DNA of 64,000 nucleotides from Epithemia pelagica (lineage: Eukaryota > Protista > Bacillariophyta): NCBI GenBank assembly GCA_946965045.2, contig OX337228.1, positions 2,294,001 through 2,358,000 on the forward strand, read 5' to 3'. Position numbers and translations under genes: made by a program. Below, piece after piece: positions 6,379-13,636 of this stretch. The first letter of the stretch is position 1; each line of letters begins with the position of its first letter. The notes under the pieces are model-generated. The model was not told where the DNA came from and made no database searches. It saw only the letters and a program-made list of their open reading frames with translations.

Positions 6379-9300
6379 TCATTTTTTTTTAGAACGATCT
6401 TTACTAGGATAAGCTACTCCTAAGCGGCGAGCTGGCAAAGGAGTGGGGCGTCGTCTGTGGGCGTGATGAACTCCGTCATCGGTATTGGGGAATAGATAGG
6501 TGTGACTTTGTGTTATGCGAACTTGTTGTCGTTGATGATGGGCTCGGATGGCAGCGATACTGTTGTTGGCGTGGGTTGCCAGTCCGGAGACGATGGCGTG
6601 GCTCAGGGAGGCTTTTGCGAAATGGCCGATGGAGAAAATGTTGGCTTCACGGTAGCAGAATTTTTTGACTTGTTTGTTGGCGGCACCCAGAAGATTGGAC
6701 GGCGCATGGTCGAGTTGTTGGTACAGGGCAAAGGCTTGTGGGTGGGGGAGACTGCGGCCGTTCGCCTTTCCAAAATGTGGATCGTCCCACGAGGGAGGAA
6801 TTGTGGTGGAAAATACGTGAGGGTAGTGGCTCGATGAGAAAAGTAATTTGTCGGCAAAAGATCCCAAGGATCCGAGGTGGTCAACCGTGAATGGCAAGAG
6901 GTAAACACCTTGATGGAGGAGGTGTTGGGCCGTGTCCGGGTCACGACAATACTTTGCCCGAGCAGCGTCTTGATGCGTCTTTGAAGCACATTGTGCAAGT
7001 GTAAAGTGGTCAGACGGGTCAAGAGTTGGCTGGGGAAGCTGTGGCGGCGGAACGGTGATGTCAATTGCAACGTATCGAAATGGGTCGTTGCGGTGTGGTT
7101 GGGTAAGAAGCATGCCGACGTCGGCCGGGCGGATGTTTCTATTGTGTTGGGGGGCAAGGCCGGGCGGTTCCACATGAACGTCATGTGGTGAATCCACCGC
7201 TTTGGCGGCGAGCGCGATTTGGCGTAGTAGGTCAAAGAGGGTGTCGCGTATCGCGTTGGAGAGGGCCGTTTTGGACGCGGCACTGCATGAGAAGAGATGG
7301 TCGCCATGCGGGTCCAACGTTTTCTTGGCTGTACAACGGCAGACCGTGGACCGTTCCAGTTCATCTGTCGTGAACAAGGGCAAGCGAAGTTTTCGCCGCA
7401 GAGCTGTCCGAAAGATGTTGTTGGTCAATCGGAATTGGGAGGCAGTTAGTGGCATGGTAAGTGCCATGCTGGTGAGGGGGTTGAGGAGGGACGGGAGAAA
7501 AATTCGTTGTTCCGCCGGCGTGGTTTCCATCAAATGAGGCATCACGTGCTCTCGCAAAATGTGGTTAGTTTGTCCGTGGTGGGTGTTGTGGTCGAATCTG
7601 GATGGGTCGAAAAGGGCATCGTCTGCTTGTTCGTTTGCCAGCAGCGATAGGGCTTTTCGAAACGTGACCATTCCCGGTTTGGTGCTCTGTTGCCAGTTTT
7701 CGTATTCCTGTCTGTGGATGGAGGGGACGGGTGTCGCGGTGGAAGTGGCGAGTTGAATCGCACGAGCCGTCTGGGTGATGAGTCGTGGGTAGGCTGCAGC
7801 CGCTGCATGGTGGAATCCCAGTCCGCCCAGGCGTTGAGGGAGAGAGGCAATGAGAGTGGATGGGACAATGATTGCGTCTTCGGGCAGGGATGTCGTCACG
7901 GCCAGGAACTTGACAATCAAACGGTCGGTTTGCTGTGTGACCGGGCTGGACCAAAGGGTGGTTCGTGGGTTGGTGGCTTGATGGGCCAGAAGGATTCTGC
8001 TGGGAGCAGGTGAAGGATCGACGCCATGATCGAGTAACGGAAGAGTGCTCCTTTCGTTTGCAAATCGTGCAGTTGGTCCAGGTATTCGATTCTTTCGTTC
8101 ATCTTGGTGAGTTTTTGATTTATGTATGTCCGGGCAAACTGGATGGAACCGATTGGTTGCCCCAGGAAACGGACCGGGCAAACTGGATGGAACCGATTGG
8201 TTGCCCCAGGAAACGGACTCCGTCGGTGATCTCTGCCGAGTGTGGGTCTGTTGGTGACAGGAATGTGAGTGCTTTGTCAAGCCCTTCTCGATTCAGGATG
8301 GAGAGCTGTGGACTGGTTCCCGTTGTGGAGGTGAGAATTTTTGTTTTTCTTTGGTTCATGATGATTCCTAACGGCTTGCCCAGTTTGTTGAAGCGGTTGA
8401 GGAACCAATGGAGGTCAGTATGGGGCAGGCATACCGAGGTATCGTCCATAATGGACGCTGTATGTGCTTTGCCACCCATACCATCGTCTGCTGGGTCGCC
8501 TTGGCGTAATCGTTGTGTGGCACGAAGGGCCTGTTCTTTGTTAATTTTGGTTGTCAGTGCGAGGAGGACTAAGCATGAGAACAGAGGGCTCAAGGGGCAG
8601 CCCTGGGGGAACCCTGCTTCTTGGAGGAGGTATTGTGCTTGTTTGCACTCGTCGAAGTACCATGAATGGCATGGTTGATTGGTCAGTAGATCAAACAGGG
8701 GGACGAGTGGCGCCGTTGCTGGTTCGGAGAGCAGGATTTTGCGGGCCTCGGTCCTGGAAATGTTGTTAAACATGTTTGTCAGGTCTAGGAGGACCAGACT
8801 TCGGCTCGGTGGAGGAGGTTCTTTGTTTGTTGTGTCGTCTTGTCGGTCGATGAAACGGCGGACAGCGGACGCGGTGGTTTGGGCCACAAAATCCACTCCT
8901 CCAGGGATTTGTATTCCGTATTGGCCACCTTTTAGGAGCAAGGGTCGGATGGACTCTGTCTGGTGGACTAGTGCCGTTTTCGCCGCCACTCGTCGAATGG
9001 CGGTGCCGATACCGATTGGACGCAACCGTTCGGGGTTGGTGATGTCCTTGTGGAGGGCAAGGAAATAGTTGCTGGACAAAACGGTCCTGATCGTGGGTGG
9101 GATTTGGGCAGTGATGACAAGTTGCATGAGGGCCTTGATGTGGGAGAAGTAGGGCCGCGTTGCGTCGGGAGATTTCGTGGTCCTGTGGAGGGCCATGGAT
9201 ACGATGACGTCGATACAATTTGCAAAGGGACCCGAAGCCGTTCCTGGCTTCATTTGTCGAAGCGCTGTTTCAAAGAGGTCGTCCTTGAGTTTCAGCATTT

Positions 9301-10366
9301 GGTTGGCTTCTGGTGGATGGTTGGTGGATCGTTGACCGCCGGTTCTGGTCGCAGGTGGTGGCTGTCTGCGTGGCGGGAAGAGTTCGTCTTGGCACCTTGC
9401 AATTCGCGTTGGAGTGAGCGTTGCTGTTGGTGTGTTGGTGGTGAGACGCTGGAAGGCGGCTCTATAGTTGCCGAGATCTGCTGCCTGTTGTGCCGCGGCG
9501 AGTCTCCAGGAGGGAAGCTTTCCGTCGTGTTGATGGCGCTGTCGTTGTTGCCTTTTCTTGTTTCCTTGGTTCTGCTTGCCTGTGGTTGTCGGAAGCGGTG
9601 TTGGGTTCCATGTTTGGTTGTGAAGGTCTTGTAGCCGGCCGGCCTTGAGCAGGGACAATCTGGCTTTGAGGGCATTTGAGTGGGAGAGGTGGATGGTGCC
9701 TTGGATGGGAGCGAGAAGGAGTGGTTCTAAGAGCATAAGTAGTTTCCAGAACGGACTCGCGTCTGTTTGGTAACTCGGGGGTCGTTCATCTCGGATGACT
9801 GATGGGTTCATCTCTGGAGTGGCGTCGAGGATCCAGGAGACGGTGTTGTTGTACATGGTGTAGAATTCTGCTCTGGCGGGTGGTTTTAGCTTATGCCAGA
9901 TGGAGCGACGGAAAGGTGGTGGTGTCATTTCCAGTTGGTGGAGAAAGGACAGGCTTCTGGTCCAGTTTGTTTCGACTTCCGGAGTAGCATGTCTGAAGGT
10001 TGACAGCACTAGTTGAAGATTGTTTTTGTTTCTACTATGTTTTTTCGTTATGTGTTGTTTGAGGTGGCCCGTTGTAGTGAAGATGGCGGTTGGTGTATCA
10101 CAGTGGTGGCAGAGATGGAATCCGTGTTGGTGGCAAAAGGTTGGAGTCATGTAGTCGCTTGGGTGTGTGTTGTCGTGTTCGGTGATGATATGCTCTTTCA
10201 GGTGGGCATGTGGTCTTGTGCTGTGTCTCGGTACTTGCCACGGGCAGCCAGGCACTGGGCAGTGACGAGGTGGGTTGATTCTTGTGTTACTCATTCGGCG
10301 CCTTGGCCCATTCTGCATGTGGGTCCACATGGCCGATGCGGGAGTCGGCGACGCTGGCATCCCCAT
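6379..10366 (-). pseudogene. Retrotransposon ORF2 (ZnF-RT-zinc knuckle-RLE), split into three frames
   Basis: Pieces: 10366/10294 to ~8174, then 8129 to ~7996 (TYINQKLTKMNERIEYLDQLHDLQTK...), then ~7995 to 6379. Breaks are a 44-bp tandem duplication (8130-8173 = 8174-8217) and an apparent 1-bp loss at ~7995. Confidence 0.88.
8130..8217. repeat. Perfect 44-bp tandem duplication inside the RT ORF
   Basis: ccgggcaaactggatggaaccgattggttgccccaggaaacgga occurs twice head-to-tail. Confidence 0.97.
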
Positions 10367-12563
10367 TCTGTACTAGTGACTGGGCGAAATGCCACGCGTC
10401 TTGCGCGTCTGTGTCATTTGAGAATGACGTTGTGTGTTGCAAGTATTGTTGCAGCTCTGGGAGTCGCGACGGGTTGTTATGTCGCACATATTGCTTGATT
10501 AGGTCGATCTCATTGCCGGTTGGAACGGAAAAGTGATGTCCTGTTTCGTCGTCCTCTTCTGCGGGGAGGAGGGAGCGGGAAAGGTCGTCTGATGCGGCAT
10601 CGATCATTTCCGCGTCATCTTCTTCTTCAATGCTGTCTCGGTTGGGTGGGCTGTCATTTTCGCTTGACTCTTCTTCTTCCTGGAGTGGGGCGAAGGTGTT
10701 GTTTCGCGCTGGTGATTTGGAGTCGTCGTCGTATTCGTTTTTGTGGTGCCTGGGTGGTGTTTGGACGAGACGGAACGCAGTGTTGGCCACTGTGTTCCAG
10801 TCTGTGCCGTCGTCATAAGGGTCGTCGTCGTCGTTGTCGTTTCGATGGGACGATGGGGCGTTCCTCTTGTTGGGTGGTGGTGTCCCTGGGGGGCTGTCCC
10901 TGGTCCTGGTTGGTGAAGAGGTGGGACGGGCCGCATTCGCTTGTTCCTGTTGGTGGTGATTGGTGTTGTTGTTACGACGAAGGAGGCGATCTGTGAACTC
11001 CAGAAGCCTGTTGGTGTGGCTGGAGGATGGAGGCGTCGGTCGTTCGTTGTTTTCGTTGTTGTTTCGTGTCGGTAGGGTCGCGGTTACGGCAGCTAAGGTA
11101 GGAAGGAGAATGTTCTCCGGGAATCCGGGATGTTGGCGGATTGTGTTGGTTGTGAGATGGTGCGTGTCCGGGGTCTTTCGCAGGTAGAGCGTGAAAGACT
11201 GGGGATCCGGGTCGACGTGTTCGTACTCTGGGAAGAGTCCCACGTATTCTTCGATTTCCTGGAGTTGCTCCCATTCTTCGTCGGTCGCCTCGATGTTGAT
11301 CGGCCTGAGTCTGATTTTGACACACGATCCGTAGAACTGATCGATGTCTTTGAGTGCTTCAAGTGTTGTTGTCCTTGTCGTTTGGTTTTTGGGCATTGGT
11401 AGAAGTTGGATTCGGTTGTCCGTCCAGAGGATTTCCGTGTTCCTGTTGGCGGCCCGGAAGGCGTTGTAGCTTCGGAGCAGTGTTTCGAAGTTGTTGCGGC
11501 TGGACGCAGCGACGTATACCACTGGTACCTGTCCGCGTTGCTTCGTTTTGAGTTCGCCACTAAAGGTGCCCGCTCGGCAGCCTATGTGGTTGAAGAAATC
11601 CATGCCTTGGAGTTTCTTCGGGAGATGGGGTGTTAGGCAAGTCTGGATTGCCAGAGCCAGGTCGATGAAAGCCCGTCGATGTTTCACGGCTTGGGCTGGC
11701 GCTCCCACGATGATGCCATACGTGTCGCTGTTGCGATTGTTGCACGCGGGCTGGTAGACGTTCACTTGGTCGTATCTCGGATTGATGGTTGGGTTTGATT
11801 GTGCCGTGCCGGATCGGAGCACGCATTGTTCTCCCCATTCGTCGTAGAGGAAGTCGTCGTTGTGGTGGCGATGCCACATCTGGCAGACGAAACGAAGTCC
11901 CTGTTCGTTGAATACGTCTGAGTCGAAGGCATCGTTCTCCGGTGCGGGGGATAACGTCACATGGAACGTGGAGGTGTGTCCACTACGGGACCGGGAGGGG
12001 GAATCTTGTTGGCCACGGGTGTTGTTTCTGGTTCCAGAGAGTTTCGTCTCAATGAAATCAACGGAGTGCACCTGGAGCCACATTGGCTCTTCCCGTTTGC
12101 GGTGGTGAGCAAAGACGTCATTCAGGTGTTTCTTGAGGGATGTCTCGGTGAGGCGGGGAAGGGTCGCTTCCACCTGTGGGTTCGGGTTGTGGTTCACTGC
12201 CACATGGATGTGAAAGAGAATGCCTGGTTCCGGGGTTGGCGGACGTGGCTTTGGAGACTGGGTTTTACGGTACGGGTTGGCGGGAGAGGGTTTGTTGTCC
12301 TCCGTGGGGGTGGAGGCCTGTTCTCTGTGGGGCGGGGAGTGTTCCGGGGTTGGGTTGTCCTGGCCGTGGGGGTTGGCTGTTTCGGTGGGTCGTGCATCGT
12401 CTTGGTCGTTGTTGGTTTGTTCCGGGGTGGCGTTAGGTTGTCCTTCGTGGTGGACCGTCATATTGTCAGGGTACCGAGGCGTCGTTCCTGCCTGATGGGT
12501 GTTGTCTTCGTTGGTAGATTTCTGTTCGGTGGTGTCGATGTGGTTGTTGTTGTCAATGGTCAT
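10287..12563 (-). CDS. Retrotransposon ORF1 (758 aa), no recognisable domain
   Basis: Intact ORF directly upstream of the RT ORF. It has a globular-looking core (GILFHIHVAVN..., YGIIVGAPAQ..., VPVVYVAASS...) flanked by low-complexity N/P/T/D/E regions. Confidence 0.75.
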   Translation of the reverse strand: MTIDNNNHIDTTEQKSTNEDNTHQAGTTPRYPDNMTVHHEGQPNATPEQTNNDQDDARPTETANPHGQDNPTPEHSPPHREQASTPTEDNKPSPANPYRKTQSPKPRPPTPEPGILFHIHVAVNHNPNPQVEATLPRLTETSLKKHLNDVFAHHRKREEPMWLQVHSVDFIETKLSGTRNNTRGQQDSPSRSRSGHTSTFHVTLSPAPENDAFDSDVFNEQGLRFVCQMWHRHHNDDFLYDEWGEQCVLRSGTAQSNPTINPRYDQVNVYQPACNNRNSDTYGIIVGAPAQAVKHRRAFIDLALAIQTCLTPHLPKKLQGMDFFNHIGCRAGTFSGELKTKQRGQVPVVYVAASSRNNFETLLRSYNAFRAANRNTEILWTDNRIQLLPMPKNQTTRTTTLEALKDIDQFYGSCVKIRLRPINIEATDEEWEQLQEIEEYVGLFPEYEHVDPDPQSFTLYLRKTPDTHHLTTNTIRQHPGFPENILLPTLAAVTATLPTRNNNENNERPTPPSSSHTNRLLEFTDRLLRRNNNTNHHQQEQANAARPTSSPTRTRDSPPGTPPPNKRNAPSSHRNDNDDDDPYDDGTDWNTVANTAFRLVQTPPRHHKNEYDDDSKSPARNNTFAPLQEEEESSENDSPPNRDSIEEEDDAEMIDAASDDLSRSLLPAEEDDETGHHFSVPTGNEIDLIKQYVRHNNPSRLPELQQYLQHTTSFSNDTDAQDAWHFAQSLVQNGDASVADSRIGHVDPHAEWAKAPNE

Positions 12564-13483
12564 TTTTTCTGGAATTTTGGTTGTAAGATGGGTGGGGTCG
12601 GTTGTTTTTTTGGTGTTTTTTTGTTTTCTTGTTTGGTGGTGGACAGGGAGCGGCGGTCCGGGGTGATGGTCATGGAGGCGATGGGGTGGGAGCTGTGGTG
12701 GGCCGCGTTTGGGCGTTGTTTGTTTCGGCTGGGCTGGGCACGGCTGTGGGTCGGTTTCGAGTGGACATGCATCGTTGGCGTTGTTGGCTGGGTGGTTGTC
12801 GGGCGAAGGCGGCGGTGATCCTCAGGAGGCTTCTCGGGGAAAAGGGTCTTTTCCTTGATTGTGAGGGTTGGGGGAAGGTTGTTCCGGACCTTGAAACAGT
12901 CATTGGTGTTGGTTGGGACCCAGGGTGAGGGGTCATTCGGAATCTTTGGGGTGGTTCCTGGTGTCTTGTTGAAGACGGTTGTCGTTGTGGATATCGCGTT
13001 GTCGGTTTGGGTAGCTGTGGACCGGGTCTTTGTGGTGGATTTGGGACCTGTTGGATGTCTTGGGCCGGTGCGAGGGAGTGAGGGTGGTTCCATTGTCGAG
13101 TTGTCGACGTGGTCTTGTCGCTGTCGCAGCTGGTGCCGGACTCCGTGGTTGTCGTTTGGTCGGTGGTGTAGCCGTTGGTTTGTTTTTGGTGGTTGGGGAT
13201 TGGGGCGTCCGTTGTGCGTGCGGTTTTCGGTCGGTGTAGGGCCTTGTGACCGGTGGTTACCATGGCGGTACAGGGAGAAGGAGGCGGGTTGATCGTTTTG
13301 TTTGAGTTTTCGGAGTCCTCGTAGTGGTTCCATGACCATCGAGTGGGTCACCGGGCGCGTTGTCCGTTTCGTTCCGATTGGCGGTGGCGCGCGGATTGTT
13401 GGTTGGCGTTTGGGTCGTGGTTGAAGCATGGGAGACGTGTTTGATGCCGAAAAATCCCATGGCGGGTCCGCGTCTTGCGCCAT
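12560..13483 (-). CDS. Putative retrotransposon ORF0 (307 aa from first ATG), Pro/Thr/Arg-rich with basic tail
   Basis: ATG at 13483. Its TGA overlaps the ORF1 ATG (ATGA at 12563-12560). It may be favoured by the T-poor strand composition. Confidence 0.4.
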   Translation of the reverse strand: MAQDADPPWDFSASNTSPMLQPRPKRQPTIRAPPPIGTKRTTRPVTHSMVMEPLRGLRKLKQNDQPASFSLYRHGNHRSQGPTPTENRTHNGRPNPQPPKTNQRLHHRPNDNHGVRHQLRQRQDHVDNSTMEPPSLPRTGPRHPTGPKSTTKTRSTATQTDNAISTTTTVFNKTPGTTPKIPNDPSPWVPTNTNDCFKVRNNLPPTLTIKEKTLFPEKPPEDHRRLRPTTTQPTTPTMHVHSKPTHSRAQPSRNKQRPNAAHHSSHPIASMTITPDRRSLSTTKQENKKTPKKQPTPPILQPKFQKK

Positions 13484-13636
13484 GGGCGCCGTGACCGTCG
13501 TACGCGGGGACAAAGGTGCAGAAGAGGACACTGTCGGCAGTGTTGTCAATGTTATCGTCCTCGTAGTAGTTCACAGGAAAACAGTTTACTTTTTCGCGTA
13601 TTTTTTTTTCTTCTTCCATTTGTGTTTCTAGCTGTG

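Follow-up and report, generated by a model that had tools for sequence, protein, structure and literature searches.

A decayed copy of a retrotransposon without long terminal repeats (non-LTR), approximately 7.2 kb in length, is located at 6382..13574 on the minus strand of a 64,000-nucleotide stretch of the genome of the diatom Epithemia pelagica (assembly GCA_946965045.2, contig OX337228.1, positions 2,294,001 to 2,358,000; this whole stretch is termed the window, and coordinates without a prefix refer to it). The element is a dead copy of a diatom retrotransposon with two open reading frames (ORFs) and is of the restriction-like endonuclease (RLE) type with an R2 fold. The stop codon of ORF1 and the start codon of ORF2 overlap, and the joint reading, i.e. 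a two-ORF, R2-fold RLE long interspersed nuclear element (LINE) whose ORF2 would be made by termination-reinitiation, is regarded as likely. The original prediction, which was based on the window sequence only, had proposed a tricistronic RNA (ORF0, ORF1 and ORF2) translated by two successive reinitiations at two stop/start overlaps, ATGA at 12563-12560 and ATGAGTAA at 10294-10287 (both minus strand). The letters of both overlaps were given correctly, and the coupling of ORF1 to ORF2 is strongly supported by comparison with related copies and fits termination-reinitiation. Conversely, the ORF0/ORF1 junction did not withstand this comparison, as the two frames form one ORF in relatives, and the tricistronic organisation is refuted for the family by 15 intact relatives in which ORF0 and ORF1 are fused.

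Conservation of the ORF1/ORF2 junction

In the window copy, ORF1 ends with a TAA codon at 10289-10287, while an ATG in the ORF2 frame is present at 10294-10292 (minus strand) and opens the peptide MSNTRINPP, which is followed by a C2H2 zinc finger; the overlap of ORF1 stop and ORF2 start, ATGAGTAA, covers 10287..10294. The ORF2 ATG is situated 5 nucleotides (nt) before the ORF1 stop (AUGAGUAA) or, in some subfamilies, on top of it (AUGA). A search of the genome assembly (60.5 Mb, 23 contigs) with the window DNA returned approximately 30 related copies with 66-72% nucleotide identity but no close copy of the window element, and four full-length relatives were retrieved for comparison. At all 28 related loci assessed (24 distinct sequences), ATGAGT is followed directly by TAA, TAG or TGA, with ORF2 in the +1 frame, and about 42 copies keep either this arrangement or ATGA with ORF2 in the other frame. 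Furthermore, a genome-wide search with the junction-region pattern yielded 44 matches, as opposed to a single match for the reversed control.

The subfamilies with ATGA at the junction possess a spacer that is 1 nt longer, their ORF1 stop is the TGA of the ATGA, and their ORF2 lies in the -1 frame; they include a young subfamily represented by three copies that are 99-100% identical and whose ORFs are intact. The codon that provides the 'AT' of the ATG is AAT, GAT, CAT or TAT, depending on the subfamily, and is never NAC, while among the NAY codons of ORF1 only 13% end in T and 87% are NAC. Judged by these sequence comparisons, the ORF1/ORF2 overlap is more than a product of chance and is conserved across the family.

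The arrangement extends to more distant relatives. A second family in the same species, with an ORF2 that is 42% identical, carries ATGTCTAA, ATGACTAG, ATGAGTAG, ATGTGTAG or ATGA at the junction, and its junction variants ATGNNTAG, ATGNNTAA and ATGA display the same geometry as those of the window family. Metagenomic relatives with 29-36% ORF2 identity and with an ORF1 of 622, 947 or 1,560 codons carry ATGA at this position, and their ORF1 cores exhibit weak homology to the diatom ORF1. A stop and a start codon that are a few nt apart and out of frame, following a long ORF, constitute a signature of reinitiation, for which SART1 is the example among LINEs (PMC10275272, PMC5972666, PMC3894237). 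This signature was found in the form of AUGAGU followed by UAA, UAG or UGA, of AUGNNUAR, or of AUGA, in the approximately 42 copies, the second family and the metagenomic relatives.

A number of distant loci displayed individual features. At L055 (4400-4500) and L058 (3030-3120), the first ORF2 zinc finger starts immediately past the ORF1 stop, in the -1 frame. In the metagenomic locus L053 (5880-6010; ENA ERZ25039503 contig_41414), the 947-codon ORF1 ends in TAATG, and a 29-codon ORF then leads through ATGA into ORF2; this double stop/start overlap, observed on a single contig, may represent a frameshifted ORF1 tail. The assembly that contains L054 (ENA ERZ21939226 ctg1362l) shares a 100% identical element stretch with the diatom genome (L035 versus C1:5219720-5220720), whereas a junction probe from the second-family element in L054 (901 bp, L054:4600-5500) gave no match above approximately 70% in the diatom genome, a difference that suggests a distinct strain or haplotype, or else a polymorphic insertion.

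Constraint on the sequence upstream of the ORF2 start

A stretch of approximately 50 nt immediately upstream of the ORF2 start, inside the 3' end of ORF1 (10295..10345, minus strand), was identified as conserved by alignment and by its synonymous conservation. Across eight subfamilies, synonymous codon identity amounts to 0.87-0.92 in the last 20-30 codons of ORF1 versus 0.51 in the core, and the proportion of synonymous differences (pS) is 0.05-0.3 at the ORF1 3' end versus 0.55-0.76 elsewhere. Since synonymous identity is high and pS is low, these nt are constrained at the nucleotide level, and the constraint persists in subfamilies where double coding is excluded.

A comparable feature was noted at the opposite end of ORF1, where an invariant motif in the first codons (GACGCGGACCCGCCATGGG, 13456-13474) resembles the stretch that precedes ORF2 (GAC.CGCGCACCGGCCATGTGG, 10300-10345), and where the synonymous sites of the first ~60 codons are also frozen (0.8-0.96). 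Both motifs may be instances of one cis element that serves initiation or binds protein.

ORF0 and ORF1 as parts of one gene

In the window, the ORF0 frame extends from its first ATG at 13483 to a TGA stop at 12562-12560 (minus strand), which overlaps an ATG at 12563-12561 in the ORF1 frame. However, 15 of the 28 related copies have, in place of the two frames, a single continuous ORF1 of 1,001-1,074 codons, counted from the first ATG, and the window pieces (307 and 758 codons) add up to 1,065 codons, which is within the size range of the ORF1 of intact relatives. ORF0 (12560..13483), a weakly constrained, low-complexity segment of approximately 307 codons that is rich in P, T, N and K, aligns to the N-terminal ~300 residues of the long ORF1 proteins, with which it shares the motifs TMQVHSKPS.GRR and (A/T)ITPDR. 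The remainder of these proteins aligns to the window ORF1 (10287..12563), which corresponds to the C-terminal 758 codons, i.e. the conserved core and an acidic tail, and displays 55-65% amino-acid identity to the relatives.

The frame changes by one position within an interval where both frames are open (12560..12652); this interval is a low-complexity, hypervariable, N/K/T-rich linker that lies between ITPDR and the TGA and includes the ATGA overlap. ITPDR (12667-12653) is read in the ORF0 frame and NPYRK (from 12278) in the ORF1 frame, and the linker contains two A7 runs (12622-12616 and 12611-12605) and one A6 run (12568-12563). The Met with which ORF1 was proposed to start is located within the linker and is not conserved among relatives. 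Conservation across copies of the ORF0 stop and ORF1 start, which the original prediction had put forward, was not observed: none of the relatives compared carries a stop at the homologous site, and the overlap has no counterpart in any of them.

The N-terminal third of ORF1 contains no in-frame stops in eight subfamilies, as compared to 41 and 36 in the other two frames, and it is for this reason considered, on sequence grounds, to be coding and not an artefact of composition. Selection on it is weak, with ratios of nonsynonymous to synonymous change (dN/dS) of 0.37-0.75 versus 0.06-0.26 in the core. The fusion of neighbouring ORFs that had been named as speaking against a tricistronic element was encountered in mirrored form: intact copies fuse ORF0 to ORF1 (approximately 1,060 codons), not ORF1 to ORF2. 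As read from these alignments, ORF0 and ORF1 are one ORF1 gene of approximately 1,000-1,100 codons. The most plausible view of the ATGA at 12563-12560 is that of an accident, a putative by-product of decay, which attracted notice because T-poor DNA leaves all frames open over long distances.

Domains and class of ORF2

The first piece of ORF2 (8174..10294, minus strand), delimited by Pfam, zinc-finger patterns and a tblastn search with an intact ORF2, encodes two C2H2 fingers at 10261-10163 and 10111-10037 (ORF2 residues 12-44 and 62-86) and a reverse transcriptase (RT) domain, RVT_1, at about 8821-8198 (Pfam, E = 1e-8). The remaining pieces (6423..8174) were located by tblastn with the intact ORF2 of the relative L031 and lie in three frames (8174-7995, 8004-6508 and 6506-6423); they include a CCHC plus RLE domain at 7341-6832, recognised by the motif CxC..H..C, RD, E, RPAD, D. 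The ORF2 of the window copy is broken at least three times, near 8174, 8000 and 6507, which the original prediction had missed. The break near 8174 is a perfect 44-bp tandem duplication (8128..8215, with copies starting at 8215 and 8171) in the region encoding the C-terminal part of the RT, and the peptide RFLGQPIGSIQFAR is encoded twice as a result. The window copy is dead, as the intact ORF2 of a relative matches it in four successive frames; its broken ORFs were read only as separate pieces.

RVT_1 is detected with E values of 1e-8 to 5e-10 (Pfam), and across 29 sequences the residues of the RT motifs do not vary. The C-terminal motif of ORF2 reads C-x-C-x11-H-x4-C, followed by RD, E, RPAD and D; C654, H666, C670, E709, R722, P723, D745 and K781 are invariant in the same 29 sequences, and D725 of the RPAD motif is nearly so (90% or more). 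The apurinic/apyrimidinic endonuclease (APE/Exo_endo_phos) domain was not found in ORF2 by Pfam. A structural model of residues 330-1150 of the ORF2 of an intact relative (predicted local distance difference test score, pLDDT, 88; predicted template modelling score, pTM, 0.83) had as its best Foldseek matches over 821 residues the R2 proteins of zebra finch, turtle and silkworm (E about 1e-13, template modelling score 0.55-0.60), with human L1 ORF2p ranking behind them. A search of PDB sequences with ORF2, as a single sequence or as a profile, gave no match, and the relatives returned by single-sequence and profile protein searches were all unnamed, with no named clade member among them. Because of the CCHC and RPAD..D..K motifs, and because R2 proteins are the best structural matches, the assignment of the element to the RLE-type (R2-supergroup) LINEs is supported by sequence and by the predicted structure, in agreement with the class that the original prediction had named. 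RLE-type non-LTR elements are usually described as single-ORF elements (PMC3894237); in contrast, all relatives examined here have, ahead of ORF2, a separate ORF1, which measures 600-1,560 codons.

Expression of ORF2 and alternative explanations

In the proposed mechanism, a ribosome that finishes ORF1 would be held near the stop and would restart at the junction AUG, and a small fraction of ORF1 translations would in this manner also give ORF2; the ~50 conserved nt upstream may help the restart. Termination-reinitiation is probably the best explanation of ORF2 expression, because the junction geometry has been kept even where the frame, the stop codon and the bases between them have changed.

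Several observations weigh against this explanation. The main caveat is presented by L055 and L058, which lack an AUG at the junction (AUAG, CUAA) and in which ORF2 is open in the -1 frame across the stop; these junctions would also fit frameshifting or non-AUG restart, and could reflect either of these or simply decay. For calicivirus RNAs, non-AUG restart is on record from in vitro work (PMC5972666). Additionally, the ORF2 frame of the window contains further ATGs upstream of the junction (10366, 10330, 10318 and others), which had been overlooked in the original prediction, and two in-frame ATGs, at -41 and -29, are also invariant in most subfamilies. The latter were assessed as the main ORF2 start and rejected, since the ATGA subfamilies either have them in another frame than ORF2 or have a stop before the junction ATG; two lineages carry a stop 21 nt upstream in the ORF2 frame. 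With these two ATGs thus set aside, the AUG adjoining the ORF1 stop is the only constant candidate start of ORF2 in the sequences compared. Furthermore, pairing of the 50 nt before the restart with diatom 18S rRNA equalled that of shuffled sequences (RNAduplex, z = -0.3 to +0.4), and the complements of the conserved UGGGCC and GGGGA motifs are absent from diatom 18S, the helix-26 loop of which reads differently. Pairing of the kind seen in a TURBS, a site for ribosome binding upstream of termination, finds no support in these duplex energies and missing complements. RNAalifold, applied to 13 junctions, identified only short invariant hairpins (CAUGUG..CGCAUG) and no covariation, and single-sequence folds of the junction had no excess stability (z = -1.6 to +0.7). 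Finally, the frame change in ORF1 may have been introduced during the assembly of an A run, which would leave the two-ORF conclusion unaffected.

It is rather unlikely that ORF2 is translated independently of ORF1 termination, either from an internal ribosome entry site (IRES) or from a shorter transcript with a promoter in the 50-nt stretch, the overlap then being a matter of compaction. Such independent initiation would suit an upstream stretch in which nucleotides are conserved although neither a structure nor an 18S match could be detected, as well as the similar motif at the 5' end of ORF1, but it leaves unexplained that the ORF1 stop is kept no more than 5 nt (<=5 nt) from the AUG in two families and their distant relatives, a spacing that survives the changes named above. 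Fusion of ORF1 to ORF2 by programmed frameshifting appears quite improbable; the shift would have to be +1 in most subfamilies (at GAG-UAA-C, antizyme-like) and -1 in those with ATGA. In copies with the ATGAGT junction (type A), 80-209 nt of open ORF2 frame precede the stop, L055 and L058 combine an ORF2 in the -1 frame with the lack of a junction AUG, and L050 has an A6 run before the stop, all of which would be compatible with a frameshift. However, the direction needed differs between close subfamilies (+1 versus -1) while the AUG stays fixed, and this lack of conservation in the frame offset argues against a dedicated frameshift site; moreover, the preference for NAT codons at the junction preserves an AUG that frameshifting does not need, the ORF2 frame of L040, L045 and L056 is closed by a stop 9-21 nt upstream, and no canonical slippery heptamer was noticed on reading the junction sequences.

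With regard to the first junction, a true tricistronic element, in which ORF0 is a separate gene and reinitiation occurs at ATGA for ORF1 and then at ATGAGTAA for ORF2, is hardly credible. The ATGA overlap is present at 12563-12560, and the succession of TAATG, 29-codon ORF and ATGA in L053 makes relay arrangements conceivable in the clade, but the absence of a homologous stop from the relatives, the read-through in the 15 intact copies and the unconserved Met in the hypervariable linker all contradict it, and the window copy itself is a singleton with a multiply broken ORF2. The alternative that the ORF0/ORF1 split is a homopolymer assembly error, and that ORF1 is intact in the window, has a low probability. 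While the break interval holds the A7, A7 and A6 runs and the assembly consists of only 23 contigs (long-read origin assumed), this copy carries further lesions that are real, the 44-bp duplication among them, and comparable A runs occur in many other copies of this assembly whose 1,000-codon ORFs are intact. The element has two ORFs even if the frame change is such an error.

Relation to known systems

Translational coupling at UAAUG in SART1 is said to have been described by Kojima, Matsumoto and Fujiwara in 2005. SART1 is an APE-type element of the R1 clade and possesses a gag-like ORF1 of approximately 700 aa. The UAAUG stop-start coupling of this telomeric LINE of Bombyx mori has been reviewed (PMC10275272, PMC5972666). 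Both SART1 and the diatom element have a bicistronic LINE RNA; its ORF1 stop and ORF2 AUG overlap or all but overlap, and ORF2 is out of frame. They differ in that SART1 requires a downstream RNA structure, whereas the diatom element is conserved upstream and no downstream structure was found for it, and in that the diatom element is of the RLE type, with an AUG that precedes the stop or lies on it (AUGNNUAR or AUGA).

Caliciviruses and influenza B virus, in which restart depends on a TURBS, resemble the diatom element in restarting after a very long ORF with stop and start a few nt apart (AUGA and similar), and in having a conserved upstream stretch (roughly 40-80 nt) inside the first ORF. 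Conversely, motif 1 of the TURBS pairs with 18S rRNA while the diatom element lacks such complementarity to diatom 18S, and the former are viral RNAs and not retrotransposons.

R2 elements have a single ORF and insert in 28S rDNA. The diatom family shares with R2 (R2Bm, R2Tg, R2Pm) the structure over RT, linker, CCHC and RLE as well as the N-terminal C2H2 fingers; it differs in its large separate ORF1 and in the presence of copies on many contigs, and sequence identity to R2 is only 12-14%. Members of the CRE clade (CRE1/2, SLACS, CZAR, MoTeR, FoTeR) are, likewise, RLE LINEs with a CCHC motif and the signature of a restriction enzyme-like (REL) endonuclease, and SLACS and CZAR also carry an upstream ORF. 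The signature of CRE/SLACS elements, C[x1-3]C[x7-8]H[x3-4]C[x9-10]RHD/N..E..R/KPD[x12-14]D/E (PMC12857005), is matched by the diatom element in motif order, though with X11 in place of X7-8, X19 in place of X12-14, RD in place of RHD and RPAD in place of R/KPD. Unlike the CRE clade, no spliced-leader or telomere association was seen for the diatom element. Similarly to LINE-1, which encodes ORF1p, the diatom element has an upstream ORF, the product of which presumably coats RNA, with a domain resembling an RNA recognition motif (RRM), a weak match (Z 7.5 to 2w7a_B); the diatom ORF1 is, however, three times longer, and neither a coiled coil nor a C-terminal domain (CTD) was detected in it.

RLE LINEs are usually described with one ORF, and stop/start coupling in LINEs rests mainly on the insect element SART1. 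While the coupling itself was already known, its occurrence in an RLE LINE that has two ORFs, together with an upstream element left unexplained, appears, as judged from sequence, to be new. The overlap, conserved in this diverged lineage of two-ORF RLE elements despite switches of frame and turnover of the sequence, would represent another and independent natural system in which ribosomal restart after very long ORFs can be studied, and model diatoms are transformable. A broader generalisation, i.e. an unnamed and widespread marine RLE clade (diatom and metagenomic) with a giant RRM-bearing ORF1, reinitiation after 600-1,500 codons, a cis element without calicivirus-type 18S pairing, tolerance of either frame offset and perhaps non-AUG restarts, is tentative, with a likelihood slightly short of even. 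The ORF0 case additionally serves as a warning for annotation, in that frameshifted copies on a T-poor strand yield long, plausible extra ORFs with accidental ATGA overlaps.

The ORF1 protein

The ORF1 core was modelled with AlphaFold2 and folds moderately (mean pLDDT 62) into repeated beta-alpha-beta-beta-alpha-beta units. An RRM-like domain at 11388..11729 (minus strand; model residues 184-297) aligned over 97 residues to the RRM of human L1 ORF1p (2w7a_B, Z 7.5, VIA-align), and to other RRMs as well. The conserved core probably contains RRM-like RNA-binding domains, an assignment that is taken as a lead only from the predicted fold. ORF1 had no match in Pfam or the ESM Atlas, and an exact-protein look-up of the window ORF1 returned no record. 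A second ferredoxin-like unit was observed upstream of the RRM-like domain in the core.

Limits of the element and additional observations

Both ends of the element coincide with a shift in strand composition along the window, where an A/C-rich, T-poor block extends over approximately 6,382-13,574 on the minus strand, with a T content of 11-20% on the coding strand. Homology with other copies begins at GTGAAC... and extends to an A9 run, approximately 40 nt past the ORF2 stop; the 5' end could be placed only approximately (13574-13589). A 5' untranslated leader at 13484..13574 (minus strand) is conserved among subfamilies in a 13-copy alignment, and the homologous ORF2 stop (TAG, 6422-6420) is followed by a short 3' untranslated region with the A9 at its end (6382..6422, minus strand).

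Three of 12 matches to the 18S rRNA gene in the genome (C8:2482901-2485333, C17:1950181-1952597 and C17:1991399-1993815) exceed the remaining nine (1,773 nt) in length by approximately 650 nt, which suggests that some rDNA units contain an intron or insertion. Immediately upstream of the element start (GTGAAGTGAAC...), the DNA is often an A run or A-rich, as in the flanks of L013, L020 and L007 and at 13600-13625 of the window, and these A-rich 5' flanks may reflect a target-site preference.

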